In this document: one piece after another, positions 7,344 to 56,835 of the stretch | Layout: every line of letters starts with the position of its first letter | Numbering within the stretch: the first letter of the stretch is position 1 | Assembly (NCBI GenBank): GCA_040285825.1 | Contig: JAUPSS010000010.1 | Coordinates: 1,114,881 to 1,178,880, forward strand | Length of the DNA: 64,000 nucleotides | Direction of reading: 5' to 3' | Origin: Eukaryota sp. TZLM1-RC | Taxonomy: Eukaryota; Protista; Metamonada: BaSk clade | Made by a program: the position numbers and the translations under genes | Notes under the pieces: generated by a model | What the model was told of the DNA's origin: nothing | The model's input: the letters and a program-made list of their open reading frames with translations, nothing else | Database searches by the model: none

Positions 7344-7647
7344 GTTTACAGAATTGGAAAGGTGAATCAGATGGAACAATTTGATTTGAACTAAGATTCA
7401 TATCTTGTCTTTTTTCCTTGTTTAGGATCTGGTTCAAGGATCATGGATATTGTGAAACTTAACAAATCCACTGTTGTTGTAGAAATGTAGTAATTGTTGG
7501 TAAGATCATTTGTATGGAAGAAGTTATCATGGATATTGAAATTCAAACCTAAAAACCATATTTAAAAAGTAGCCACCACAAACCATCATGCAGGAACAAC
7601 TACATAAAAAACTTAGATAATGAAAACTTATTTATTTACAAATCACA

Positions 7648-8106
7648 TCACAGTACACTGTCGAATGTGTTAACCAAGCCTTTCAGTGACACTGGGCAAT
7701 CCAGAGATGGGCACGCTTCATACTTTTCAGTATGCCTGGTCAGCACTTCACGTTCTTGGTGAAGCTTCTCAATTAACTCTTGGTTTTGGGTAATCAAGAC
7801 CAATGAAGATTCTACGTCCCTTCGCTTTGACCTTTTCGAGTAGTTTGAGCTTCCAATGAATGTCATGGCTGAGGTTTGGTTTGGGAAAACATAGACTGCC
7901 TTGCCATGGTAGCGCCATCCTGGTCTTGTATAGACAAAGGTACGAACGGACTGGGAGAGTTTACAAAGAAGACGGCGTAGTACGTAGTCATAAGCACGAG
8001 GTACAATGTTTGGGGTTTTCCTGATAACAAAGTATAGATGAATGACCAGAATGACTGTGAGTGTAACAACAATGGTATCAAATACTAGTAATATAGACAG
8101 AGACAT
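7648..8106 (-). CDS. PGS1: C-terminal half of CDP-DAG:glycerol-3-phosphate phosphatidyltransferase (PGS1, PLD superfamily), second HKD-type motif
   Basis: VPRAY...YTRPGWRYHGK...TFIGSSNYSKRS..RDVES.LVLIT.N.EL is the PGS1 C-terminal signature; it is preceded by a 29-aa hydrophobic leader that is not PGS1-like. Confidence 0.85.
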   Translation of the reverse strand: MSLSILLVFDTIVVTLTVILVIHLYFVIRKTPNIVPRAYDYVLRRLLCKLSQSVRTFVYTRPGWRYHGKAVYVFPNQTSAMTFIGSSNYSKRSKRRDVESSLVLITQNQELIEKLHQEREVLTRHTEKYEACPSLDCPVSLKGLVNTFDSVL

Positions 8107-8124
8107 GTAATCAGAAATTTGAAA

Positions 8125-8530
8125 TCATTTATTCGAATTCAATTTGATAATCCTCATTCAAACGCTGAAAATTCCAAAATCAAACAATGCAATGAACTTT
8201 TGTCCAAATTGTCCCGCCAACAGCATGCAAAATACAATTGGTATCCATTTGTTTTTTCTCTTTTTGCTTCGCTTGCTCCCACGGCTATACGTTTTTTGCA
8301 GATTTTGAAATGATTGTAAAGAGAAGAACTAACAGAAATTTCAACAGATTGTTTTGGCAAAATACAATTGTGTTTTCTATTCTTAAGGGGATGTTGCAGA
8401 CGGTTTTTGATGCTTTGCTTTCTCTTGGATCTCACTATGAGAGAGTTGCATATAGTTGTTTTGTTTTGGGAGAGATGGATTATTTAGATATTGATTAATA
8501 AGTTTTCCTATAAATATATGTAATTAAAAA
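8125..8530 (+). mobile_element. 3' fragment of RLE-type non-LTR retrotransposon family B
   Basis: YPFVFSLFASL...FWQNTIVFSILKG...GEMDYLDID followed by an A-rich tail; related to 21580-22274, 42490-42870 and 59340-60010. Confidence 0.75.
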
Positions 8531-9266
8531 AAGTAAAAAAAAGCGTATGATTCAAAAAAAATTTGATTAAGAATTTGTTTTAGTTATCAAAAGTTTGTTG
8601 ATTAATTCTTTGTACCAACCATCTTCAATAAATGTAAATCACACGTGCATTCAGCCACTGTGAGTCCGTGTCAAGATTGAAGGTTTTTCGATCAATAATG
8701 TCTACAAAGTAAGCTTTTAAATTCCCGAGATCTTTTGTTCTGGTTTACAAAAAGACTGTAACATGGTTGTTACTTTACCGTTCAATTGGTTCCTCTTATA
8801 TATAGAAGGTAGCTCAAAGGACTTGGATGTGATGGAAAATCAATTGATTACATCAACACTATATTCTTTATAAAAACGGAAGAAACAAATAAAACAAATG
8901 CTCTATTGAATTATTCTTTTGAATTTCTTCAACTGTGGTTTTTACTGTATTTCAATTTCTACAATACATGAACAAGAGCTGACAAAAAGGAAATTCTTGG
9001 AATATGTCGTTCAGTTTTCATCATTCTTGGAAACAGAAAAATAAACAGATTCCACTCATGGACAGAAAAGGGCGTCCATAAAACACCTTTCTGAGATAGT
9101 GTAATTTGAGGAGAAATTAAATTTGACTCAGATCTAATAATGGATAAATGGCCACGGTTTCACCAACTTGAAGCCACCAGAAAACCATCAAAATGACACG
9201 TAAGCATGACGACTATCGAACTTTTAAATATTTTGCTTCACCATTCATATCTCATCTCATATCACA

Positions 9267-11309
9267 ATGTCTCACCTAGAATGCGGAATATGCCTTCAGA
9301 TCATGGAGCAACCGACCACGCTCCCTTGTGGTCATAGCTTCTGTCGTGATCGATGTCTGTTGCCCTCAAGGAAGCATAACTCCACCTGTCCTCAATGCCG
9401 CGAGTTGATTCCTTCCATGTGCCACCGTGTTAACATCACTCTGCGCGACATCATTGAATCCTCCACTCAACACTCTCCCGAACCTCAACTCTGTAAAGGA
9501 TGCGAAGAAGCTCCTGCCACCCTCTTCTGCTCTGACTGTGATCTCTCTTTCTGTGAGAAATGCTCTGCTGGTGTTCACGCAATGAAAGCATTCCAATCCC
9601 ACAACATCGTACCCCTCTCCGAACGCTCAAATGTCTCCCTACCAAAATGCCCTCACCATAAGGGTAAGCAAATCGAGCATTATTGCACCAAGTGCAAGGT
9701 TGCTCTATGCGATTCATGTGGCTTGCTCCAAGGCCACTCGCTCCATCACGAAGCTCTTGTTTCTTTTTCGCAAGCCAAGGAAGCCTTCACAAAGCAAATT
9801 CAAGAGTTTCAAGCCAATACTTCCACTATTACCCCCTTGGTAGCTCAATCAGGGGATAAAGTAGAATCTGTCGTAAAGGAAACCCTCAATCAATCCCAAT
9901 CAATACTACATGATTTGATTGGTGATTTGATTAGACAGTCAGGTCTCAGACTTCAGCAGTTAGAATCCTCAAATACTGTTGAAGAATCACTTGCTTTTGA
10001 TGGTGCTGCCAAGGAAAGAGCTCAAGAAGAGATTCAAAAGATGCATGATGTAGTTGATGAATTTAAAACTATTTTATTTTCTTGTTTTGATAATTTAGAA
10101 TCTGAAACTATTGGTTTTAAGCTATCTTTATTAGGAAAATTACTTGGCAAGGAGTTGATTGATGTTGACAAGCTGAATATTTCAAAAAGAGCTCAAGAAC
10201 TTGTCTTTGCTGCCCAAATTGGTCAAGATTGTGTCCCTTCAAGAGATGAAATTGATGAATTAATTCCTCTTGAAATTGACTTGGAATTAAAACAAAAATT
10301 AATTATCAATTTTATCAAAAATTCAAAATCAATTAATGTTTCAGATTTTATTTGGCTCTTTAACCTTGAATCTAATTTAGTTTCTAATATTGATTTTGAT
10401 TTTGTTATCACTAAATTGGAATTTGGTAGATTTTCCAATCATGAATTTTTCAATGTTTTTAATTTTGCAATTCAACATTCTAATTCTTTGTTATTAAGCA
10501 AGGTTATTGATAATTATTCATTTGAATTAGTTCCAGAATTACCAACTATTCCAAGTAATTTATTATCAAATATTACTTCAACAAATTTTTTAAATAAAAG
10601 AAAAGAAGAATGGTTGGAGAAGGTAATTAAAAAGAATTGTTCAAGGGACAATATTGGTGAAATTTCCAGAAGTTTATTAGGAAGGGAATTGATGACCAAA
10701 ATTAGTGTTGGGGTTTGGGTTGATTCAGGTCACATAAACGACCTAACCACCAAGCTTAATAAAGGTTTAACTGAAAATTGGGGGGATTTAGAAGTTGTTA
10801 TTAATTCAAGTGGCAACGGCATCAACAATTACAACGAACTTGAACTCTTTGATGTGGTGGTGTTGGCTTCTCGCCATGTCTCTTGTCCAGGCCAATACCT
10901 AAACCAGCTGATAGAAGCTGGTAAAGGTTTGGTTTTGTTCAACTGGCGTCCATCACACAGTCCCCAAGGGTTTAATTACTCTTGCTTTAGTGAGGGCAAA
11001 TTCACTAACCTTGGATCACAACAACAAAACATTGTTAAAACAAAGTCAAATGACCCAATATTCACAAATGTCAACTCTTTTGCTGTTCTTTATGCTCGTA
11101 AAGATGCCCAACTTGTTAATGGAACCTTGTTGGCAAGTGTGTCTAATGGAAGTCCTTTAATTGCAAAGAATGAAATAGGACAAGGTAGAATGGTGGAGTT
11201 TGGTTGTGGTAATTGGAGTAGTGATGTTTGTGACGATGGTTGGCAAAGCTCAACTGATGGTCACAGGTTGTTTGCCAATTCTATTGTATGGGCTAGTAAA
11301 GGGATTTAG
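9267..11309 (+). CDS. TRIM-like protein: RING, two B-boxes, coiled coil and an alpha/beta C-terminal domain (putative E3 ligase)
   Basis: C3HC4 RING (CGIC...LPCGHSFC..C...CPQCR), B-box1 (CKGC...CSDC..SFCEKC...H...H), B-box2 (CPHH...YCTKC..LCDSC...H..H). Confidence 0.85.
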   Translation: MSHLECGICLQIMEQPTTLPCGHSFCRDRCLLPSRKHNSTCPQCRELIPSMCHRVNITLRDIIESSTQHSPEPQLCKGCEEAPATLFCSDCDLSFCEKCSAGVHAMKAFQSHNIVPLSERSNVSLPKCPHHKGKQIEHYCTKCKVALCDSCGLLQGHSLHHEALVSFSQAKEAFTKQIQEFQANTSTITPLVAQSGDKVESVVKETLNQSQSILHDLIGDLIRQSGLRLQQLESSNTVEESLAFDGAAKERAQEEIQKMHDVVDEFKTILFSCFDNLESETIGFKLSLLGKLLGKELIDVDKLNISKRAQELVFAAQIGQDCVPSRDEIDELIPLEIDLELKQKLIINFIKNSKSINVSDFIWLFNLESNLVSNIDFDFVITKLEFGRFSNHEFFNVFNFAIQHSNSLLLSKVIDNYSFELVPELPTIPSNLLSNITSTNFLNKRKEEWLEKVIKKNCSRDNIGEISRSLLGRELMTKISVGVWVDSGHINDLTTKLNKGLTENWGDLEVVINSSGNGINNYNELELFDVVVLASRHVSCPGQYLNQLIEAGKGLVLFNWRPSHSPQGFNYSCFSEGKFTNLGSQQQNIVKTKSNDPIFTNVNSFAVLYARKDAQLVNGTLLASVSNGSPLIAKNEIGQGRMVEFGCGNWSSDVCDDGWQSSTDGHRLFANSIVWASKGI

Positions 11310-12104
11310 TTTGTAAATAAATTTATATAAAAGATAGAAATTTCAAAAATCAAACTTCAATTGTACAATCCAAAACTTTTTTCTTTTTTCAACTGTTTGT
11401 CCATTTTTTGCTGAAACCTTTATTACTACGTCTAAAAGTAATAGACCTAGATCAACGTGAATAAGGTTCTTTACAACACTATTAATTTTTTAATATTTAA
11501 TTTCAACCGTTTTAAATCATATGATTAAAATGGAATTTGTTCAAACTCCTTAGTTCATCACATTATTGTGTTTGTTTGTGGTAATTCTAGAATGATTGGA
11601 TAAAGGAGAACAGTTTCATGTTCTATTATAGCGACTCAGAAAACAACTGTAATAAAAACGGACAAACAAAGGGATCAGTGTGTGGTTTGAGTGTTGAATA
11701 GGGGTTACCCGCAGGTATGCTCTAAAACGAAAATAAAAGGGCTAGCAAAGAGATTGGTTCCGTGGCATAGTTACAGATTACGTCAAGACTAACAATGATT
11801 CTGTGATGTTTTGGTTTTTTGTCAACAATTGACTAATCATAATCTTAGCAAAAGATTCATCTTAATGACCCACAGGAATTCTCAGGAATTCTTTATATTC
11901 TTTCTTGATATTGCGTACAAAGGTGCATCCTGTTTTTCTTAAGTGTCCTCAAATTATAAACAACCACAATAAACCACAATCTCCAATGGCTATGCTTTTT
12001 ATCTAAAATCATTCTGGTAAGGGAAAATCTGCAAATCCACAACATGTATCAAAGATATTTTCATCTGGTCAACAAACAATTCATCAATTGATTTAATTAT
12101 ATTA

Positions 12105-13690
12105 ATTTATTGAATTTGCACACTTGATTAAATTAAATCATAACTAATGGGACGACTATCATTAAACCAAGATTTCCTCTACAAAATCTTGATTTGCTTG
12201 CTGTCTAGCTAAAGCTTCTCTAATTCGATTGAAAAACCGTGGTAATCTATTAATAATGGCAAATTGAATCCGTGAACGCCATAAAAAAATATCAAATCTT
12301 TTCATTGTTTTTTCTTTCACCATTTTTTGGAAGTCATCCAAAAAAGTTTCTGCTTCAACTGATAATCTTCCATTTATCGAAAATGGGAAAGCAATAAAAA
12401 CCAGCTGTGTATTTCTATCGATATTTGCATCTTCAATTTCTTTATCATATTTTTTATGTTTTTCTTTTGCTTTAAAATCCAGAGCAGCCACAGGATTAAG
12501 TTTTCTTCTGTGAACCAAAGTATCGTTTGCAACATTACATGAGACAAAGTCAACAATAGCTTCAGAATTATCAATCCAATCACAGTATACATCACCTCTA
12601 TCATCAGAACCAAAATTATTCAGAGAAAGTGTTTCTTTCAGCAGGGGCTCTTTGATACACGATATCCTTGCAGTTTGTGCCATATTGAAAACAGTGTCTC
12701 TAACAGCATCATGTAATGAAGAACGATAAGTTATCAATTTAGAGCAATTTAGAGCATGGCGCAAAGTGAGTTGAGGTGAATTCGAACAAATACATTTTTT
12801 CTTTTGATAATAATTGGTTAATGGGGATGTTCAAATATAATCTCATTTTTGTTACAAATGCTTCATTAGTAGCACACAATCCAAATCTTCGTGGTACAAT
12901 GGTTACAAAAAGTGAAGAATCTGACACCTTGTTTTCACAAACACCCTTTTCCAATAACAATGAGTGAAGATCTTGATTTAAAACAGCCGAGCTGCAAATA
13001 TTATTATAAAGATCTTTTTCATACATTCCAGTCAATCTTTTCTGTAATGTTCGAAGAGTGTACTTCAAATTTAAAACATTTTTTTCTGGAATATTGCCAT
13101 TGAATGATTGGGGAAAACATCGACCCCATTTTTCTACATCAATTCTTGAAATTTCTTCATTTAATGCAAAAACAGTGGAACTTTGCGTTGTCATCAATAA
13201 ATCTTCCCAATCTGCAAATCTTTCGGAGAACTCAAAGATTGCATTTCTGCATCCACCAACAAAAAGCACACGAGGTAAGAATAGAAGCCTTCGACCACCC
13301 TAAACCACCATATTGTGGACTAAGGTAAGCATGATCTGGAATTTGAAACATTTTACATCCCAGTAATTGAGACAGAACTTTTGCACGTAACTCATTAAAC
13401 TTTTGAGCCAAAGGTCTAGTGACGAGAGGATTTGTAGATCGAAATATATGATTAAAATTGGAACTAAAACACAGTCTTATAATGGTAAATTTGATGTGTT
13501 TTTTTATATCTAAATTCATCATTCGGTCAATTTTGTCAGAAATTGAGTTCAACTTTTCAAACAATTTTTTGGTAATTTCATCATTATTTCCTAAAAACGA
13601 ACCCAAATGACGAATAGCATCAATTGAATATAATTTGGCTTGAATTTCAATATCATCAATTATTGTGGAAACTGGAGAATTCGATAACAA
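12105..13690 (-). mobile_element. Non-LTR retrotransposon family A (CRE-like, RLE clade), 5'-truncated or internally deleted, frameshifted
   Basis: RT end HLGSFLG, thumb LSPQYGGLG, CxC...HALNC zinc motif, RSSLHD, RLE-like GDVYCDW..IVDFVS..K.KEKHKKY, FIAFPFSINGRL; near-identical copy at 54660-56020. Confidence 0.85.
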
Positions 13691-14859
13691 ATTGATTTAT
13701 GAATTCTCTATAAAAAATGGTGGCAAAAATTATAAAGATTTCGGATCAATCAATTTTGTGACGCTTGACGGAATGCTTGCTCTGTGAATATTAGTATTGT
13801 CAATAAAATGCTCAACTCTTACACACGAGATGCAGTTGTAGCATCTAAAACCATTAAATTTTTGTGCGGTATTTCTTGGATGACAAAGTTGTTCTTCGAT
13901 GCTAAGCAGTTCATCCAAGTGTTTCAATCTCAAAATCAACCTTCTCATGATTACAATATCTTTTGTTATGCAAATTTACAGCCTCATTATTTGTCAAAGT
14001 ATTCCTAGTCGATCATGAGTCTACCTTTTCTTTAAGTATACTCGTTTCACAGTAAAAAAAACAATCACACCATATGGAATTTCATTGAAGGAAAAACTCC
14101 ACAAACTAAACAGGAGACTTCTCTTGCAATGAATATGGTTACATGTAACTTCTCACTTCAAATACTCGCTTGGAGACCTTTCCACAACGCATTGTTTCCA
14201 CCTATCCTCTGTGACGATAATAATGATTGGTAATCTAGATTGATTTTGCCTTTAATTATAGTATTTTTTGAATACATGATATAATTGATAAAAAACAATA
14301 ATTTGCAAGGACTGAACACCCCGTGCACACTGCCATCATGACAGGACCAGTTTGAGTTTTATTTTCAATTATGATTCATTAGTGGCTAAAATGTGATAAT
14401 AATATGAATTCAATTCATAACCACTATTTTTCCCAAAACTACTTTGTTATGTATACCGTGCTGAAAACAAATCTTGAAAGAATACAACAAAATTGGAATT
14501 TGGAATTGACAAACCATTAGTGAGTGGGTGTAAAGTGGCATGAAATGTGTATTCTGTAAAGTGGTTGTTAGCATATTTTGGATAAACATAGACAAACATT
14601 TTAGACAATGGATGTACAAAATTCGTTCTTCATAGTTTTTGTTTTAAATAATGAAACCAAATTAAAAAATGGGTGATGTTGACAAGGACAAGGGCATTAA
14701 ATTTCCATTTTTCTTATTCATTATTGGTGGTCAATTATTGCACTGGAGTTTAGTTCAATTTTAAATGAGTTTAGTTCAATTTTAAATGAGTGAATATGTA
14801 GCTTTATTGTTTCTTGGTCGTTTCTTTTGAAAAACAAACTTCCAGTAAATTGTTTTTGA

Positions 14860-15200
14860 TAATGATATTGAAGAGGCTGTTGCTGATAGAAATACACAGC
14901 TAGTTTTTATTGCTTTCCCATTTTCGATAAATGGAAGATTATCAGTTGAAGCAGAAACTTTTTTTGAATGATTTCCAAATAATGGTGCAAGAAAAAACAA
15001 TGAAAAGATTTGATATTTTTTTATGGCGTGCACGAATTCAATTTGCCAGTAATAATAGATTACCTCGGTTTTTCAATCGAATAAGAGAAGCTTTAGCTAG
15101 ACAGCAAGCAGATCAAGATTTTGTAGAGGAAATCTTGGTTCAATGATAGTCGTCCCATTAGTTATGAATTAATTTAATTAAGTGTGCATGTTCAATAAAT
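14860..15200 (+). mobile_element. 3'-terminal fragment of retrotransposon family A
   Basis: Near-identical to the 3' end of the other copies, ending in ttagttatgaattaatttaattaagtgtgcatgttcaataaat. Confidence 0.85.
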
Positions 15201-15427
15201 ATCAAATGAGCTCAATGAATAGTTTAAAATAACTACCCAGATTAATGAATTGTCAATTTTATCCAGATTAACCCCCAGTTTTGAAATTATATTTGGTTGA
15301 AAAAAGTCAGTCTTAATCAGTTCAATAACAAAACTTAAAATATGTAAAGTCAAAATCCATTTATCTACAAAAACAATTTAATTAAAGCTTATTTACACAA
15401 TCACATTCTAAAAAAAGAAAAAAAGAA

Positions 15428-16630
15428 TCAAATCTTTGCCCCGTAGAATGAATTAGCCTTTGCTGAAGCAGCAATGAGGTCCATTCTACTTTTAAGTTTT
15501 CTACTCAACTTCCCCAACACCTTGGCCACAGTATTGGAAAAGTTGAGATAAGGAGTCGTTATGGTAACTTGCATCTCCTTATTGCTTTCATCATCAGCTA
15601 CATCAGTCAAATGCTTCAAAAAGAGCTCCAAGCAGTGACTCTCATGGCCAACTCCAGCAAAACCAGCTTGAATAGTGGGAAGAACAAAAGTATCAGTATC
15701 CAAGTTCTTTTTAGCATGAAAAGTAGAAATTAATTCCACTAAATCCCTTTTCAGTTCCTTCTTAAACTTAACTGGTCTACGTACAGGATTGGTACGAGGG
15801 GGTACAATGGAAGGAAGCCCTCCATCTACACCACACAAAGTGGTGTAAGAGTGAGTGGAGAGAACCTCATAAAGAGCCAAGTACCATTCCGCTAACTGGG
15901 GAGTTGCGTTGAAAATGAAATAACGATCTTGTTTTCCTGAATCTGGTTCAGAATTGTCATGACTTCCGGTCAGATAGTCGCTTGAAAGGTTAGCTCCGGA
16001 AACTATCACGTCATCATCAAAAACATAAAATTTAGTGTGTAAAACCCCAAATAGTTCAAAGATACGGGTGATACTGCTGAGGTAAGGGAACAGAGGGACA
16101 TGGAACAGCTTGAGAGAGAAGTTGTTGAACCGCAACAGTTTGTCAAAGAGCTCCACACAACACTTTCTGCCCTTCTTGGATTGACCAAAACCACGCAGGG
16201 AACGTCTGTGGTCAAAGACAAGGTGCACTTGAAGATCTGGATTACGTCGAAGGGCTTCATACAGAGCATCTATAATGGACTGTTCAACTTCACTAGTACC
16301 AAAGTAAAGGGCACTTATGTAGATGCGGTGCTTAGCATTGCGAATAGAGTCGAGAATATGAGTTCGGAACTCTTTCGGCGAGGAAAGAATGTCAACATTG
16401 TTTGAGTTGACAGGAATAATGGGACAGTGTTTGGCAAGAGATGAAAGGGTTGAGGCTACTACATTGTCATTCTGTTCTTCTTGAAATCCAAGAGAAGAAA
16501 CAGTCTTCCTTTTTGGGAAGACTAGAGGCTTAACATAATGTTGTAGAATGGTGAACCATATGAAGAGAAAGACAATACTAGAGGTGACTGCTGCCAGCAT
16601 TGGAGAAAAATGGAGAAAATTTAGTTTCAT
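15428..16630 (-). CDS. PGS1: N-terminal part of PGS1 (first HKD motif); stops abruptly after ANSFYGAK
   Basis: ILSSPKEF...I..AKHRIYISALYFG, LHTKFYVFDD..IVSGANLSSDY...QDRY, TTPYLNFS, AASAKANSFYGAK; N-terminal TM helix; second HKD missing and found at 7648-8020. Confidence 0.85.
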   Translation of the reverse strand: MKLNFLHFSPMLAAVTSSIVFLFIWFTILQHYVKPLVFPKRKTVSSLGFQEEQNDNVVASTLSSLAKHCPIIPVNSNNVDILSSPKEFRTHILDSIRNAKHRIYISALYFGTSEVEQSIIDALYEALRRNPDLQVHLVFDHRRSLRGFGQSKKGRKCCVELFDKLLRFNNFSLKLFHVPLFPYLSSITRIFELFGVLHTKFYVFDDDVIVSGANLSSDYLTGSHDNSEPDSGKQDRYFIFNATPQLAEWYLALYEVLSTHSYTTLCGVDGGLPSIVPPRTNPVRRPVKFKKELKRDLVELISTFHAKKNLDTDTFVLPTIQAGFAGVGHESHCLELFLKHLTDVADDESNKEMQVTITTPYLNFSNTVAKVLGKLSRKLKSRMDLIAASAKANSFYGAKI

Positions 16631-16962
16631 TAAAAACTTGAATCACTAAGTCTTTATTGAACTCAGAGAGAACTACGAATTGTTTATAGCTCAGTGTAAA
16701 TACTTCAAATATGGTTTTCTCATCACTGCAAGCACTCTGCAATGTTAATTTCTCTGCATAATAAAATTACAGATTCACCATGTTGTTGTACAACCAACAT
16801 CATCATTGTTTTACTTACATTAGTATAACGAATACGCATTTGGAGTTCTCACCACCTTTGTATATTCCAAAAAAACATTTAAATTGTCAAAACATCCTAG
16901 TAATCAATCGTTTATGAATCACAAATTTCCAGTTTGTCCGTTTCAACATCTGTCTCGATGTT

Positions 16963-26574: not shown

Positions 26575-26772
26575 TATTGTGACTTTGTTACATTAAATTT
26601 TTGACCAATACTTCTAATATAGTTGGCGGTTATCATTACCTATAGGAGAGTAACTATAGTTGATGCGACCTAAACAGTAACAGTATCGATTTCTGAAATA
26701 ACAAGGATCGGTAGGAGTTCCTTGTGTAGTGAATAATCTGCTGCTTGGTCGTGTTCGTTGACTGCCTCTGCT

Positions 26773-27258
26773 GTATACTGTGATTGGATTGATAATTCTG
26801 AAGCTATTGTTGACTTTGTCTCATGTTGTGTTGCAAATGATTCTTTGGTTCACTGAAGAAAACATAATCCTGTGACTGCTCTTGATTTTAAAGCAAAAGA
26901 GAAACATAGAAAATATGATAAAGATATTGAAATGGCTAATGCTGGTAGAAATACACAGCTAGTGTTTATTGCTTTCCAATTTTCGAAAAACAAAAGACTA
27001 TCAGATGAAGCAGAAATTTTTTTGAATGATTTCCAAAAGATGGTTCAAGAAAAATCAATGAAAAGATTTTATATTTTTTATGGCGTTCACGGATTCAATT
27101 TGCCATTATTAACAGATTACCTCAGTTTTTCAATCGAATAAGTGAAGCTTTAGCTAGACAGCAAACAGATCCAGATTTTGTAGAGGAAATCTTGGTTCAA
27201 TGATAGTCGTCCCATTAGTTATGAGTTTAATTTAATTAAGTGTGCATGTTCAATAAAC
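26773..27258 (+). mobile_element. 5'-truncated retrotransposon family A copy
   Basis: Begins at gtatactgtgattggattgataattctgaagc and runs to the conserved 3' end gtgtgcatgttcaataaa; contains stops and frameshifts. Confidence 0.85.
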
Positions 27259-27565
27259 AAGTATGATATTGATAGGAATATTCAAATATAATCTCAGTTT
27301 TGTTACAAACGCTTCATTAGTGGCACACAATCCAAATCTTCGTGGTACAATGGTTGCAAATAGTGAAGAATCTGATGACTTGTTTTCACAAACACCTTTT
27401 TCCAATAACAATGAGTGAACATCTTGATTTAAAACAGCCAAGCTGCATATATTATTATAAAAATCATTTTCATACATTCCAGTCAATTGTTTCCGTAATG
27501 CTCGAAAACTGTACTTAAAATTTAAAACATTCTTTTCTAGAATATTGCCATTGAATGGTTGGATA
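27259..27565 (-). mobile_element. Internal fragment of retrotransposon family A, inverted against the preceding copy
   Basis: FNGNILEKNVLN...VPRRFGLCATNEAFVTKLRLYLNIPIN matches 12820-13110. Confidence 0.85.
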
Positions 27566-41305: not shown

Positions 41306-41893
41306 TGCTTTCAATATGACACAAACTGCAAGAATATCGTGTATCGAAGAGCCCCTGTTAAAGGAAACACTTTCTCTGAATAATTTTGGTTCTGATGATA
41401 GAGGTGATGTATACTGTGATTGAATTGATAATTCTGAAGCTATTGTTGACTTTGTCTCATGTAATGTTGCAAAAGATACTTTGGTTCACAGAAGAAAACT
41501 TAATCCTGTGGCTGCTCTTGATCTCAAAGCAACAGAGAAACATAGAAAATATGATAAAGGTATTGAAGAGGCGAATGTCGATAGAAATACACAGCTGGTT
41601 TTTATTGCTTTCCCATTTTCGATAAATGGAAGATTGTCAGTTGAAGCAGAAACTTTTTTGGATGACTTCCAAAAAATGGTGAAAGAAAAAACAATGAAAA
41701 GATTTGATATTTTTTTATGGCTTCACGGATTCAATGTGCCATTATTAATAGATTACCTCGGTTTTTCAATCGAATAAGAGAAGCTTTAGCTAGACAGCAA
41801 GCAGATCAAGATTTTGTAGAGGAAATCATGGCTCAATGATATTCGTCCCATTAGTTATGAATTAATTTAATTAAGTGTGCATGTTCAATAAAT
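41306..41893 (+). mobile_element. 5'-truncated retrotransposon family A copy, abutting a short inverted family-B piece (about 41230-41305)
   Basis: Matches 55465-56020; ends at gtgtgcatgttcaataaat. Confidence 0.85.
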
Positions 41894-42489
41894 ACAAATT
41901 TTACCAAAAGTTGGCTTGGTCAAATTTTGTTCCAGCATTGCAATTGAATTTGGGTATTTTACGTGCGTTGTAATACTGCAACGTTAGGTTCAACTTGTCG
42001 GTCTTGAAAATCTACCGGATAGGTGTTATTCAATTACTGAACTTCATAATTAACAATTTCGAAAAGGTTTAATAGACTCAAAGAAGATCTTCTTTAGGAA
42101 GAAACTTTATTTTCATGTTCTAGAACCAAGAATTCCTGGAAGACCCTTATTTGTCATTATCTATGCGTCTTCGATCCTTCTCTTGGCCTTCTAGTCTTCC
42201 TAGAAAGCTGCAAATGTGGTAACAGTGCCATTTTCAACATATCATTTAATTGTATTCGTTGTATTACTGTTAGGTTAAAAGTTTATGGTGCACTCCGTGA
42301 TCAACTTTATTGTAAGTGTAAGTCTCACAAGTTTAAATGGTTTTTTAGATTGTTTTTTTGGTTGATGAATCTGACAAGAATTTGTTGAAGCCGTGTTGTT
42401 CCAGACCTTGGCTGCATCAATGATTATTATTGAAAACAGGTCTACAGCCAAATAACTCAAATGAATAGTTTACACTTTCTGGTAATTAA

Positions 42490-42937: not shown

Positions 42938-44398
42938 ATGTCTCTCAGTCCTGTTAGACTGCCATCTGCTTCTCTGCCTTCTTCGTCCTCTCCACTCCCT
43001 ACGTCTTCAAAACATGCACATACACCCTCTAGGCATCGATCGGCTTTCAACCAGCCTCAATCCCCATCAGCCTCTGTCTCCGTTCTTCAGGGTACTATAA
43101 CAAAACTGAAAGAAAGCAATCGTTCCTTACTCTCTGACCTACAACGAGAACGAGAGCAACACCGCCTTGCTTCAGATAGCCCTGCCTCTGTTGATGCTGT
43201 CAGAAAGAAGTACGAGCAAGTGATATTCAAAATCCGTTCTCAATTAGATAACACCAAAGCCGAAGTCAATGCCTACAAGTCCCAAATAGGCCAACTCAAC
43301 ACTGAGAAGAAAGACCTTGCTCGTCAGGTTGAGTCGTTTAGGTCAAATGAATTAAAACTGACGAAGAGGATCAATAAACTCGAGTCTGTCCTTGCACGTG
43401 CTCGATCAGCCTTACACACTTCTCTTACCTCCAACGAACTCCTTCACCAGCTAAAGATGGAGCTTGAGGAGGACCAGGTGGGGATAGTGGCTGAAAGTAA
43501 CAGATTTGCGGAGAAGGCTAGCTTGCATGGGCATGAAGTTCAACGATTGTTAGCTGAAAACACTGCTTTGAAGAAACAACTTGATGCGACCAACGCAGAA
43601 ATGGCTGCTCAAACCCAACAGTTTTTACAAGAAAGAGAAAGCTTTAGTTTGGAATTGAGTGAGTTACGGAGACATGTTGAAGGTGATTCTGTCATTTCCG
43701 AACTTCGAATTGGGTCGGAGAACAAGCGAAAAGGATTGAGTAGTCTGATCAAGAACCTACAGGACAGAGGAAGAAACCAAACCAGCATGTTGGAAGAGTT
43801 TTTGACCAGGGTCATGAGTGGAGGGGATGTGGAGTCTAGCTTGCTTGAGTATTGCTCTGATATTGTGGCTGAATCAAGGACGTTGAAGATTGAGTTAAGT
43901 CAATGTAAGAAGGAACTTGCACAGTTGAAGGGTGGTTCTTTAGAAGGAGGATTCGTACGAAGTTCCAGTGTCATACTGGAAGAGAAACTAGCAAAGGTGG
44001 AAAAGCAGTTGAAGGAGAGCCAGAGTGAAGTGTTTGGCTTGCAAAAGGTTATAGGGAATGTTGCTTCAAGTATTGAATCTATTTTCGTGAAGCTGGGTGA
44101 TTCAAGAACTGTTTCCAGTGATTTGGAGAGTTCTTTGCAGGAGTTGGATGGCAAGGTTACTGCAATGGTATCAAATGTTAACCAGAGAGAAGGAAAGAGA
44201 AAAGGGAGAGAATCGACACGGAGGTCTGGAATGGTCTTTAATCAATCAAAATCAGTTTCCCAATCAAATTCTTCCTTCCAGCCAGATTTGATTGATTCAG
44301 GAAGATTTAATGATGAGGTGAGTGACTCTTTTATGCCAACTAAGGAAATGAAAGCTCTTTCCCTAGCCTTTGTGAAGAAAAGAAGTGAATCAGGTTAG
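42938..44398 (+). CDS. Long coiled-coil protein of unknown function
   Basis: 486-aa ORF, Ser/Pro-rich N-terminus, heptad-rich body. Confidence 0.7.
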   Translation: MSLSPVRLPSASLPSSSSPLPTSSKHAHTPSRHRSAFNQPQSPSASVSVLQGTITKLKESNRSLLSDLQREREQHRLASDSPASVDAVRKKYEQVIFKIRSQLDNTKAEVNAYKSQIGQLNTEKKDLARQVESFRSNELKLTKRINKLESVLARARSALHTSLTSNELLHQLKMELEEDQVGIVAESNRFAEKASLHGHEVQRLLAENTALKKQLDATNAEMAAQTQQFLQERESFSLELSELRRHVEGDSVISELRIGSENKRKGLSSLIKNLQDRGRNQTSMLEEFLTRVMSGGDVESSLLEYCSDIVAESRTLKIELSQCKKELAQLKGGSLEGGFVRSSSVILEEKLAKVEKQLKESQSEVFGLQKVIGNVASSIESIFVKLGDSRTVSSDLESSLQELDGKVTAMVSNVNQREGKRKGRESTRRSGMVFNQSKSVSQSNSSFQPDLIDSGRFNDEVSDSFMPTKEMKALSLAFVKKRSESG

Positions 44399-44416
44399 GG
44401 TTAGGGTTAGGGTTAG
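44395..44416 (+). repeat. Interstitial telomere-type repeat (TTAGGG)3TTAG
   Basis: ttagggttagggttagggttag, overlapping the TAG stop of 42938..44398. Confidence 0.8.
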
Positions 44417-47174: not shown

Positions 47175-47310
47175 CATCAATTCTGATGCTTTGCTTTCTT
47201 TTGGATCTGACTATGAGAAAGTTGGAGCTAGTGTTTATGTTTTGGAAGAGATGGACTTTTTAGATGTTGATTTATAGGTTTCTAATAAAAAAAATTAAAA
47301 AAAATATACA
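47175..47310 (+). mobile_element. Short 3' stub of retrotransposon family B
   Basis: DALLSFGSDYE...VLEEMDFLDVDL plus A-rich tail; matches 8405-8520. Confidence 0.7.
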
Positions 47311-54659: not shown

Positions 54660-56020
54660 ATTGGACTATTCCATTATAAGACTGTGTTTTGGTTCCAATT
54701 TCAATCATATATTTCGATCTACAAATCCTCTCGTCACTAGACCTTTGGCTCAAAAGTTTAATGAGTTACGTGCAAAAGTTCTGTCTCAATTACTGGGATG
54801 TAAAATGTTCCAAATTCCAGACCACGCTTACCTTAGTCCACATTATGGTGGTTTAGGTTGGACGAAGGCTTCTATTCTTACTTCGTGTGCTTTTATTGGT
54901 GGATGCAGAAATGCAATCTTTGAGTTTTCCGAAAGATTTGCAGATTGGGAAGATTTATTGATGACAACGCAAAGTTCCACTGTTTTTGCATTAAATGAAG
55001 AAATTTCTAGAATTGATGTAGAAAAATGGGGTCGATGTTTTCCCCAATCATTCAATGGCAATATTCCAGGAAAAAATGTTTTAAATTTGAAGTACACTCT
55101 TCGACCATTACAGAAAAGATTGACTGGAATGTATGAAAAAGATCTTTATAATAATATTTGCAGCTCGGCTGTTTTAAATCAAGATCTTCACTCATTGTTA
55201 TTGGAAAAGGGTGTTTGTGAAAACAAGTCATCAGATTCTTCACTTTTTGTAACCAGTGTACCACGAAGATTTGGATTGTGTGCCAATAATGAAGCATTTG
55301 TAACAAAAATGAGATTATATTTGAATATCCCCATTAATCAATTATTATCAAAGAAAAATGTATTTGTTCGAATTCACCTCAACTCACTTTGCGCCATGCT
55401 CTGAATTGTTCTAAATTGATAACTTTCCGTTCTTCATTACATGATGCTTTTACAGACACTGTTTTCAATATGGCACAAACTGCAAGAATATCGTGTATCA
55501 AAGAGCCTCTGCTGAAGGAAACACTTTCTCTGAATAATTTTGGTTCTGATGATAGAGGTGATGTATACTATGATTGGATTGATAATTCTGAAGCTATTGT
55601 TGACTTTGTCTCGTGAAATGTTGCAAATGATACTTTGGGTCACAGAAGAACACTTAATCCTGTGAGTGCTCTTGATTTTAAAGCAAAAGAGAAACATAGA
55701 AAATATGATAAAGATATTGAAGAGGATAATGCCGATAGAAATACACAGCTGGTTTTTATTGCTTTCCCATTTTCGATAAATGGAAGATTATCAGATGAAG
55801 CAGAAACTTTTGTGAATGACTTCCAAAAAATGGATCAAGTATGGCGTTCTCGGATTCAATTTGCCATTATTTATAGATTACCTCGGTTTTTCAATCGAAT
55901 AAGAGAAGCTCTAGCTAGACAGCAAGCAGATCAAGATTTTGTAGAGGAAATTTTATTCTCAATGATATTCGTCCCATTGGTTATGAATTTATTTAATTAA
56001 GTGTACATGTTCAATAAATA
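54660..56020 (+). mobile_element. Retrotransposon family A copy, 5'-truncated, with stop and frameshift
   Basis: Near-identical to 12105-13490 in reverse orientation. Confidence 0.88.
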
Positions 56021-56835
56021 TTTTAGTTTAATATTCCAATAAATTTCATTGTATTTACAAAAACTGCATTATTCGCACCTAATCCAAAACTTCGTGGCAC
56101 AATAGTGACAAATAGTGATGAATGAGATATTATTTTCAAGATCAAATAAACCATGAACCTCGAAACAACTGGCGAAAAAATTTATAAATTCATACAAATG
56201 GCTCACAATGAAGTCTTGAAGGAAGAAAAGGAAACAAAGCCACCAACGTACGGTTTTTGCGTAACTTTTAATAAATTGTAAAAAAAGAACCAATAGAAAT
56301 TTTAAAAAAAAAACTTTTTGGCGAATATAATTGTGTTTTTTTATATTTAAGGCAATGTCCAAGATGGTCTTTGTTACACTGCTTTCTCTTGGAAGCACTA
56401 CTTGGAACTCACCATGAAAGAGTTCCATCAAGTTGTTTTGTTTTATGAGAGATGAGTTATTTAGATGTTGATTTATAAGTTGTTTAATATAAACAATTGA
56501 CAGTAAACCAAATCACATCACCAACATCTTATATAGAACAGTTCAGCACTTTACAAGGATTCCATGATCTAAGAGTAATTGAAAACCCATTGACTGAATT
56601 TTATAATATTTGGAGATTCTAAAAAGTGGTTTAGACCAATTATTAGCTCGTTGAAAAATTCTACATTATTAATTGTTTTTGTCAATCACTCAAGCATCTG
56701 AATTTGTAATGGTTTGGCTTAATCACCCCGAATTCATATTTGTCTTATGATTTTAACTGATGAGTAATTAAATTAAATTAATTGAATCAAAATGACTGAA
56801 CAAAAAAATAGTAAACAAAAATACAAAATTCACAC

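Follow-up and report, generated by a model that had tools for sequence, protein, structure and literature searches.

We describe an interruption of the PGS1 gene in Skoliomonas litria TZLM1-RC, an anaerobic, free-living metamonad flagellate for which complete loss of the mitochondrion-related organelle (MRO) has been proposed (PMC11316075). The gene lies in a 64,000-nt stretch (hereafter, the window; positions 1,114,881 to 1,178,880) of the 1.38-Mb contig JAUPSS010000010.1 from the Nanopore-based assembly GCA_040285825.1, and positions below are those of the window. The enzyme encoded by PGS1 catalyzes the committed step in the phosphatidylglycerol/cardiolipin branch. The coding sequence of the gene is found here as two co-oriented open reading frames (ORFs) that are parted within the second PLD domain by 7.4 kb of largely mobile DNA, and neither of the two closest relatives compared shows the interruption. 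As an explanation we tentatively favor insertional fission of PGS1 into two membrane-anchored polypeptides, a reading that we hold at somewhat less than an even chance and weigh below against a recently inactivated gene, joining of the pieces as RNA, and an error of the assembly.

PGS1 is carried by two open reading frames

Judged by homology, both ORFs are parts of one PGS1/PssA-type enzyme: matches to PGS1 and PssA reach E-values of 1e-19 to 1e-22, with fungal PGS1 proteins as the best named relatives and bacterial phosphatidylserine synthases (PssA; PDB 8yr5 and 3hsi) as the best solved ones. Their coordinates, end sequences, and strand (Table 1) are as given in a preliminary description of the window, made from its letters. 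The N piece, annotated as 390 aa with a start at M11 of the longer ORF, terminates with ...ANSFYGAK-I-stop at 15428-15436, the stop standing one codon past the break. In the C piece, the sequence KTPNIVPRAY starts at 8019, directly after a CAG at 8021-8023, and is preceded by a hydrophobic, transmembrane-like stretch with an ATG of its own at 8106, a feature that had already been recognized. Pfam places PLDc_2/PLDc above threshold in the N piece, and in the C piece only the second half of PLDc_2; this partial match spans profile positions 62-127 of 132 and scores 23.2 bits, short of the gathering score of 27.

The deposited annotation, which was guided by RNA-seq, likewise holds two separate genes, of 390 and 152 aa. 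Searches of the annotated proteome returned only the 390-aa model with the N piece (over lengths of 220-700 aa) and only the 152-aa model with the C piece. The intact PGS1 elsewhere in the genome, which had been named in advance as the observation that could overturn the split, was thus not encountered in these searches, nor did the protein collection hold a joined or junction-spanning PGS1 protein. The two PLD domains are therefore not found on one polypeptide, the pieces being 7414 nt apart.

The break lies inside the second PLD domain

As a structural reference we used the AlphaFold model (pLDDT 86.5) of the orthologue from Skoliomonas sp. TZLM3-RCL (hereafter, RCL), which superposes on PssA (8yr5/3hsi) at a TM-score of 0.68-0.77. 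On this model, the break falls after K377 (RCL numbering), in the loop that leads into helix 378-397. The second PLD domain has three strands ahead of the break and the HKD2 strand, with the remaining strands, behind it, so that the gene is not split between its two HKD domains. Of the initial characterization as a PGS1 gene divided into two HKD halves, the division holds and its placement has to be moved into the second domain. In an alignment of 29 sequences, the break lies inside the motif AN.FY..KG[IV]SG..P.AY, in which G378 is near-invariant (at least 90% of sequences) and P384 invariant; the [IV]-x-G..P part of the motif is common even to E. coli PssA.

This motif is not continuous in S. 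litria, where K-T-P-N takes the place of G-[IV]-S-G. At the DNA level, the KTPN codons match the orthologues at about chance level, and homology resumes at ATT GTA CCT (IVP, which includes P384), whereas RCL residues 378-383 have no aligned counterpart by HMMER or by local alignment, the two methods agreeing. A join of nucleotide 15435 to 8020, as had been proposed, is in frame and keeps the same 10-residue spacing from GAK to AY as the orthologues (RCL GILGKAPLAY; GEM-RC1 GISGYAPIAY); KTPN, the four residues right after the junction, is not homologous to the G-[IV]-S-G of the family. Because KTPN lacks homology and residues 378-383 are unmatched, the alignments point to replacement of a few codons rather than to a clean intron-like insertion, and on this evidence about four to six codons of the motif are replaced by unrelated sequence.

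The interruption arose on the S. litria branch

The closest relatives compared were TZLM3-RCL and GEM-RC1. RCL (protein P0002) has a single uninterrupted PGS1 ORF of 1497 nt, and the PGS1 gene of GEM-RC1 (protein P0003) reads across the break site in one frame (...ANSFYGAKGISGYAPIAY...). The comparison with related genomes that had been recommended therefore finds the gene continuous across the site in both. The rRNA tree of the group is (RCL,(GEM-RC,(TZLM1-RC,Soap20-RC))) (PMC11603281), and, because both relatives are uninterrupted, parsimony places the origin of the interruption on the S. litria branch. Ordinary introns occur close by in two other eukaryotes, 3 codons upstream and 4 codons downstream of the break, but not at the break itself. 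An ancestral intron retained in S. litria was accordingly rejected, as the introns of other eukaryotes are off-site and both outgroup Skoliomonas are without an intron there.

The GEM-RC1 gene carries three one-base frame shifts away from the break (at about 10495, 10740-10790, and 11100 of contig region L003), two of them in homopolymer runs (of C and of T) and the third not precisely placed. Because of these shifts, the deposited 386-aa GEM-RC1 protein ends in out-of-frame sequence. They are probably Nanopore homopolymer or assembly errors rather than signs of a pseudogene.

Both pieces are conserved

In the 29-sequence alignment, S. litria keeps all 23 family-invariant residues (23/23), including both HKD motifs (HKD1 from the N piece, HKD2 from the C piece), and 27 of the 30 near-invariant residues, with only G378 missing at the break. 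Sites of outgroup consensus are retained to the same extent as in the relatives (51+20 in S. litria versus 49+20 and 52+18), and there is no stop or frameshift in the 400 + 119 homologous codons. The pieces thus show neither the disabling lesions nor the relaxed constraint of a unitary pseudogene, their retention of conserved sites being equal to that of the orthologues, a state that a very recent break might also leave.

How long two ORFs would stay open by chance was estimated in a simple neutral simulation with an indel:substitution ratio of 0.1, in which the probability that both were open was 0.31 at 0.5% divergence, 0.10 at 1%, 0.01 at 2%, and 0.0005 at 3%. The spacer between the pieces is a mosaic of at least 4 independent repeat insertions of different ages, with identities of 83-88%, 92-93.5%, 92%, and 97.5% to the nearest copies of its several parts. 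If these insertions accumulated in place, the pieces have been under selection. A near-identical donor block for the spacer was sought and none was found.

The C piece has a coding-like hydrophobic leader

The leader of the C piece, which is not derived from PGS1, reaches a maximal 19-residue hydropathy of 2.66, compared with 2.28-2.68 for the native anchors of three orthologues. This value was attained by none of 840 open frames of the non-coding DNA of the spacer (0/840) and by 0.6% of composition-matched shuffles (p ~0.006). The leader has T at 20 of its 29 second codon positions, and its codon usage falls at the 96th percentile of non-coding open frames and at the 17th percentile of gene windows. 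Descent of the leader from a copy of the native N-terminal anchor was not supported (p 0.05-0.45). Upstream, a five-codon ORF (8111-8128, with an out-of-frame ATG at 8126-8128) ends 5 nt before the ATG of the C piece. On short contigs of other eukaryotes (L007, at about 310-330, and L008, at about 55-70), ORF calls give apparently stand-alone PGS1 C-terminal proteins whose hydrophobic leaders are translated 3' ends of introns, a caution against taking leaders of this type for membrane anchors.

The TGTAAA motif reported after both stops is present at both (Table 1). Exact TGTAAA, with a background of 0.026 per 50 nt, stands behind only 7 of the 27 annotated genes; the related TTGTA or TGTAA is found behind 9-11 of the 27. 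With its stop one codon past the break and TGTAAA 30 nt farther on, the N piece ends in the manner of a gene. A 3' untranslated region common to both pieces was considered and rejected, because the similarity score of the two flanks (31-33) is matched by flanks of other genes, which reach 31.

The two fragments are predicted to fit together

N residues 45-400 and C residues 30-152 were co-folded as two separate chains in three runs. All three runs gave an ipSAE of 0.92, versus 0.41 for the best control; that mark was attained by 51 of 78 solved complexes and by 2 of 108 mismatched pairs. Contacts agreed between runs to at least 93%, with a partner pLDDT of at least 79. In the predicted interface, N strands 313-324 and 352-365 pair with C residues 53-77 and 99-108, by which the second domain is rebuilt. 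The co-folding prediction that had been suggested for the two halves thus gave a confident result, and the models make fragment complementation sterically plausible.

Possible fission of the gene, or its recent inactivation

Two ORFs, each with its own stop and start, where close relatives have an unsplit orthologue, are the anatomy expected of gene fission. In the scenario we tentatively prefer, foreign DNA would have entered PGS1 on the S. litria branch within the second PLD domain, replacing some four to six codons, and the gap would then have grown to 7.4 kb by further insertions. The resulting PGS1-N would retain the original membrane anchor together with HKD1 and three of the domain 2 strands, ending one codon past the break and using the nearby 3'-end signal. 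PGS1-C, if transcribed and translated on its own, would start at the ATG at 8106 and have a new hydrophobic anchor ahead of what remains of domain 2, HKD2 included. Tethered to the membrane, the two fragments could then come together by strand complementation to form a PssA-like active site that contains both HKD motifs. The suggestion of two membrane-anchored half-enzymes, made in the preliminary description, is in this sense the best-supported functional reading (leader hydropathy at p ~0.006, codon usage at the 96th percentile, and the co-fold), although it has a strong rival that was not listed there, namely, a dead gene.

Several observations weigh against fission. The cut is awkward in that it falls within a domain, not at a domain boundary, and destroys a motif whose conservation extends from fungi to bacterial PssA. 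The tests of the leader are post hoc, having been made after the feature was noticed, and T-rich non-coding DNA, when translated, mimics hydrophobic leaders, as in two ORF calls from other eukaryotes. The co-fold cannot tell fission from splicing or from a young pseudogene, because a good fit is expected of any two pieces of one fold. The age argument could also fail, and collapses if the 7.4 kb came as one block. Finally, PGS1 may be dispensable in this organism, given that S. litria is reported to lack every known mitochondrial pathway (PMC11316075). In the same study, Williams et al. confidently assigned no MRO protein in S. litria, with RCL and GEM-RC keeping more, and made no mention of PGS1 or cardiolipin (PMC11316075).

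The last point leads to the foremost rival, a strong one that we hold to be somewhat less likely than fission: PGS1 would have become dispensable after mitochondrial loss and been broken by an insertion accompanied by a small target deletion, so that the ATG, leader, and 3' motif are chance features of a young dead gene. The interruption is specific to the very lineage reported to lack every known MRO pathway, the near-invariant motif is destroyed as it would be by a messy insertion, the splice signals are poor, and at 0.5% neutral divergence the ORFs would survive with a probability of 0.3-0.7. For such a young gene, however, the mosaic spacer would have to have arrived as one block or very fast, although its parts differ by 2.5-17% from their nearest copies, and conserved sites show no excess of lineage-specific changes. 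Chance would further have to supply, together, an in-frame ATG with an open frame (~0.05), the hydropathy (p <=0.006), and the gene-like codon usage (p ~0.04), and also to place a 3' motif right behind the N piece. We retain fission of PGS1 into two anchored polypeptides, tentatively, as the leading explanation.

Possible joining of the pieces as RNA

A distinctly less probable explanation is that cis- or trans-splicing joins the pieces as RNA across the 7.4 kb, which would take a spliceosome able to use a GA donor and to dispense with the usual branch spacing. Five candidate micro-introns in the window, 29-35 nt long, provide a local standard, albeit one of only five unverified examples: each begins with GT[TA]TG and has a TRAC whose A lies at -7 (in one case -6) relative to the terminal AG. 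The donor implied for PGS1, GATTTG, begins with GA rather than GT and departs from GT[TA]TG; as noted earlier, it is one base from GTTTG, which is the donor in three of the candidate micro-introns. The last 11 nt before the acceptor, TTTGTTATCAG, contain no TRAC branch motif at -7/-6. On the 3' side, the acceptor-like site reported directly before KTPNIVPRAY does exist (the CAG mentioned above), giving an AG at the exon border with an in-frame join; the chance of an AG there is ~0.06. Base 15433 is not in a homopolymer, while both indel differences seen between the assembly and read contigs are, for which reason an assembly slip that hides a GT is unlikely. The best duplex between 100 nt of each intron end has a score of -23.9, compared with -20.7 +/- 3.7 for shuffles and -23.3 +/- 4.4 for genomic controls, and a fraction of 0.17-0.40 of the controls is at least as good. 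Complementary intron ends were therefore rejected, the pairing being at chance level.

Joining in cis would turn the stretch from 15434 to 8021 into a 7.4-kb intron of a single PGS1 gene, harboring a nested antisense gene and transposons and bounded either by GA-AG or, if 15433 is an assembly error, by GT-AG. We give this little credence. The in-frame join, the exact orthologue spacing, the AG at the required place, the conservation of both halves, and a donor that a single inserted base separates from GTTTG all speak for it, but the GA in place of GT at a site outside homopolymers and the missing TRAC motif at -7/-6 do not. The intron would also be ~250 times as long as the local micro-introns, would contain a 3'-end motif 30 nt from its start, and would yield junction residues that break an invariant motif. 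Its ends pair at chance level, although long Giardia introns depend on such pairing (PMC6679479), and the protein collection has no joined product.

Giardia-like trans-splicing, in which separate pre-mRNAs would be joined by the spliceosome at 15435|8020, appears to us still less credible. The related diplomonad Giardia does have trans-spliced split genes, which account for 5 of its 11 introns (PMC6679479, PMC8494341), the N piece has a 3' motif of its own, and both halves are conserved. The split introns of Giardia, however, keep a canonical GT, branch, and AG together with long complementary tracts (PMC6679479, PMC8494341), whereas the donor and branch motif fail here, the duplex of -23.9 is within the range of controls, and the leader of the C piece is coding-like rather than intronic. 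The giant-intron and trans-splicing outcomes put forward in the preliminary description are thus disfavored by the GA donor, the absence of a branch motif, chance pairing, and the destroyed junction motif. Splicing is lowered and not dropped, because the micro-intron consensus rests on few unverified examples. If RNA-level joining were true, Giardia-style expression of split genes would extend to the free-living BaSk lineage.

The weakest rival, an assembly artefact or a culture polymorphism with an uninterrupted real or predominant allele, is highly improbable. In its favor, the assembly is Nanopore-based and differs from the read contigs at two homopolymers in a repeat, and the read contigs over 12500-16700, probably of DNA, cover the repeats and, with one 151-nt contig, a further short piece, not the unique junction. 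Against it, both junctions lie in unique sequence inside the 1.38-Mb contig with the halves co-oriented and in order, misjoins arise at repeats and not at one codon of a unique gene, and a simple mis-insertion would not leave four to six codons missing from both sides.

The spacer and other features of the window

As described initially, the gap of 7414 nt holds a TRIM-like gene and copies of retroelements (Table 1); outside the repeats, the sequence is apparently unique. The A-rich tract at the N-side break may be the remnant of the poly(A) tail of a retroposed insert antisense to PGS1. The family of the reverse transcriptase (RT)-bearing retroelement has a depth of hundreds in the DNA contigs, versus ~2 for unique sequence. 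Its 5'-truncated copies in the window comprise, besides the two in the spacer (12095-13691 and 14857-15207), those at 26769-27562, 41306-41899, and 54671-56021, with 90-97.5% identity. Compared with every read contig of the repeat family, the assembly carries a single additional base in a T run at window position 12795 and another in an A run at 13261, which are either mutations private to this copy or homopolymer errors left in the assembly.

The TRIM-like unit is compact, extending from 91 nt upstream of the ATG to 14 nt downstream of the stop. The unit has at least 8 paralogues (84-91% aa identity) and is 92-93.5% identical in nucleotides to three or more other loci; six paralogues are on this 1.38-Mb contig, and copies of the unit are found at L004 7874-10018, L005 7920-10057, and L006 7874-10021. 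The family looks like one spread by retroposition or by another copy mechanism. The older repeat next to the C piece is unclassified and recurs in the window (47181-47303 and 56275-56481) as well as at L004 15803-16142 and L006 16064-16414 and 10190-10328. This repeat is a candidate source of the promoter of the C piece, should that piece be an independent gene.

No target-site duplication or terminal repeats of one large element were convincing in the spacer, and no known RNA families or tRNAs were detected in 7400-16900. A tandem duplication of PGS1 followed by complementary decay was rejected, as the spacer contains no PGS1 remnants. Farther along the window, three perfect TTAGGG telomere-type repeats (44395-44412), where none is expected by chance, occupy a chromosome-internal position and overlap the stop of an ODAD1-like coiled-coil ORF (42938-44398).

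Table 1. Features of the interrupted PGS1 locus, in window coordinates.
Feature	Position	Strand	Remarks
TGTAAA motif	7635-7640	-	7 nt behind the C-piece stop
C piece, ORF of 152 aa	7648-8106	-	ATG at 8106; second HKD
PGS1-homologous part of C piece, including stop	7648-8007	-	Helix, HKD2 strand, GSSN..R..D.E motif
Four codons KTPN	8008-8019	-	In place of the near-invariant G-[IV]-S-G of the family; DNA unlike orthologues
C-piece leader	8020-8106	-	ATG + 28 codons; strongly hydrophobic, transmembrane-like, then R-K; not PGS1-derived
Older dispersed repeat	8150-8506		83-88% to other copies; 44 nt upstream of the C-piece ATG
TRIM-like (RING + B-box) gene unit	9176-11323	+	Coding sequence 9267-11309; dispersed 2.15-kb repeat unit
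RT-bearing retroelement, 5'-truncated	12095-13691	-	Family of the 14857-15207 copy; 97.5% to a copy beside another TRIM paralogue
RT-bearing retroelement, 5'-truncated 3' end	14857-15207	+	Inverted relative to the 12095-13691 copy; 92% identity
TGTAAA motif	15392-15397	-	30 nt behind the N-piece stop; candidate 3'-end signal
A-rich tract (A7-G-A7-G-AA)	15410-15427	+	Abuts the N-side break; read directly
PGS1 N piece, ORF of 400 aa	15428-16630	-	N-terminal hydrophobic anchor, first PLD domain with HKD1, first three strands of second PLD domain

Comparison with known systems

What the locus means depends on the fate of its pieces. Should both be functional, the locus would join the few documented fissions of nuclear genes for membrane enzymes, here with the cut inside a domain, and would imply that phosphatidylglycerol synthesis is kept without a recognizable organelle. 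If the split gene is dead, it would be a datable molecular trace of organelle loss, in the one species where such a trace is expected. If the pieces are joined as RNA, the expression of split genes would not be peculiar to Giardia.

The closest parallel to fission is split-Doa10 of Kluyveromyces lactis, also a nuclear membrane-enzyme gene present as two co-oriented ORFs parted by an intervening sequence, with unsplit relatives; there, the two fragments associate, and expression of the C fragment is driven from inside the sequence that parts them (PMC3464245). In split-Doa10, the split lies between transmembrane helices, the intervening sequence measures 508 bp, and expression and assembly have been shown. 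By contrast, S. litria PGS1 is cut in a soluble PLD domain by a 7.4-kb spacer of mobile DNA with a nested gene. A several-kb insert with its own ORFs also parts the complementary genes cox2a and cox2b of Campsomeris wasps, comparable to the cox2 splits of green algae and alveolates, and their products are proposed to pair as a heterodimer in place of the undivided protein (PMC5374615). Those splits concern mitochondrial genomes, or mitochondrial genes moved to the nucleus, and discrete polyadenylated transcripts and proteins have been demonstrated, whereas the PGS1 case is that of a nuclear lipid-synthesis gene with two putative products.

Among metamonad relatives, the trans-spliced introns of Giardia (Hsp90 and dynein heavy chains; PMC6679479, PMC8494341) similarly leave coding parts far apart in the genome, such that joining is needed. 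They combine a canonical 5' splice site, branch, and AG with extensive pairing, of which S. litria PGS1 has only the AG. With respect to the enzyme itself, the two pieces together resemble PGS1 and bacterial PssA (8yr5, 3hsi) in having two HKD motifs and in keeping all 23 family-invariant residues. Known members of the PGS1/PssA family are nevertheless single polypeptides, whereas in S. litria the chain is interrupted and has lost the [IV]-x-G of the motif AN.FY...[IV].G..P..Y.

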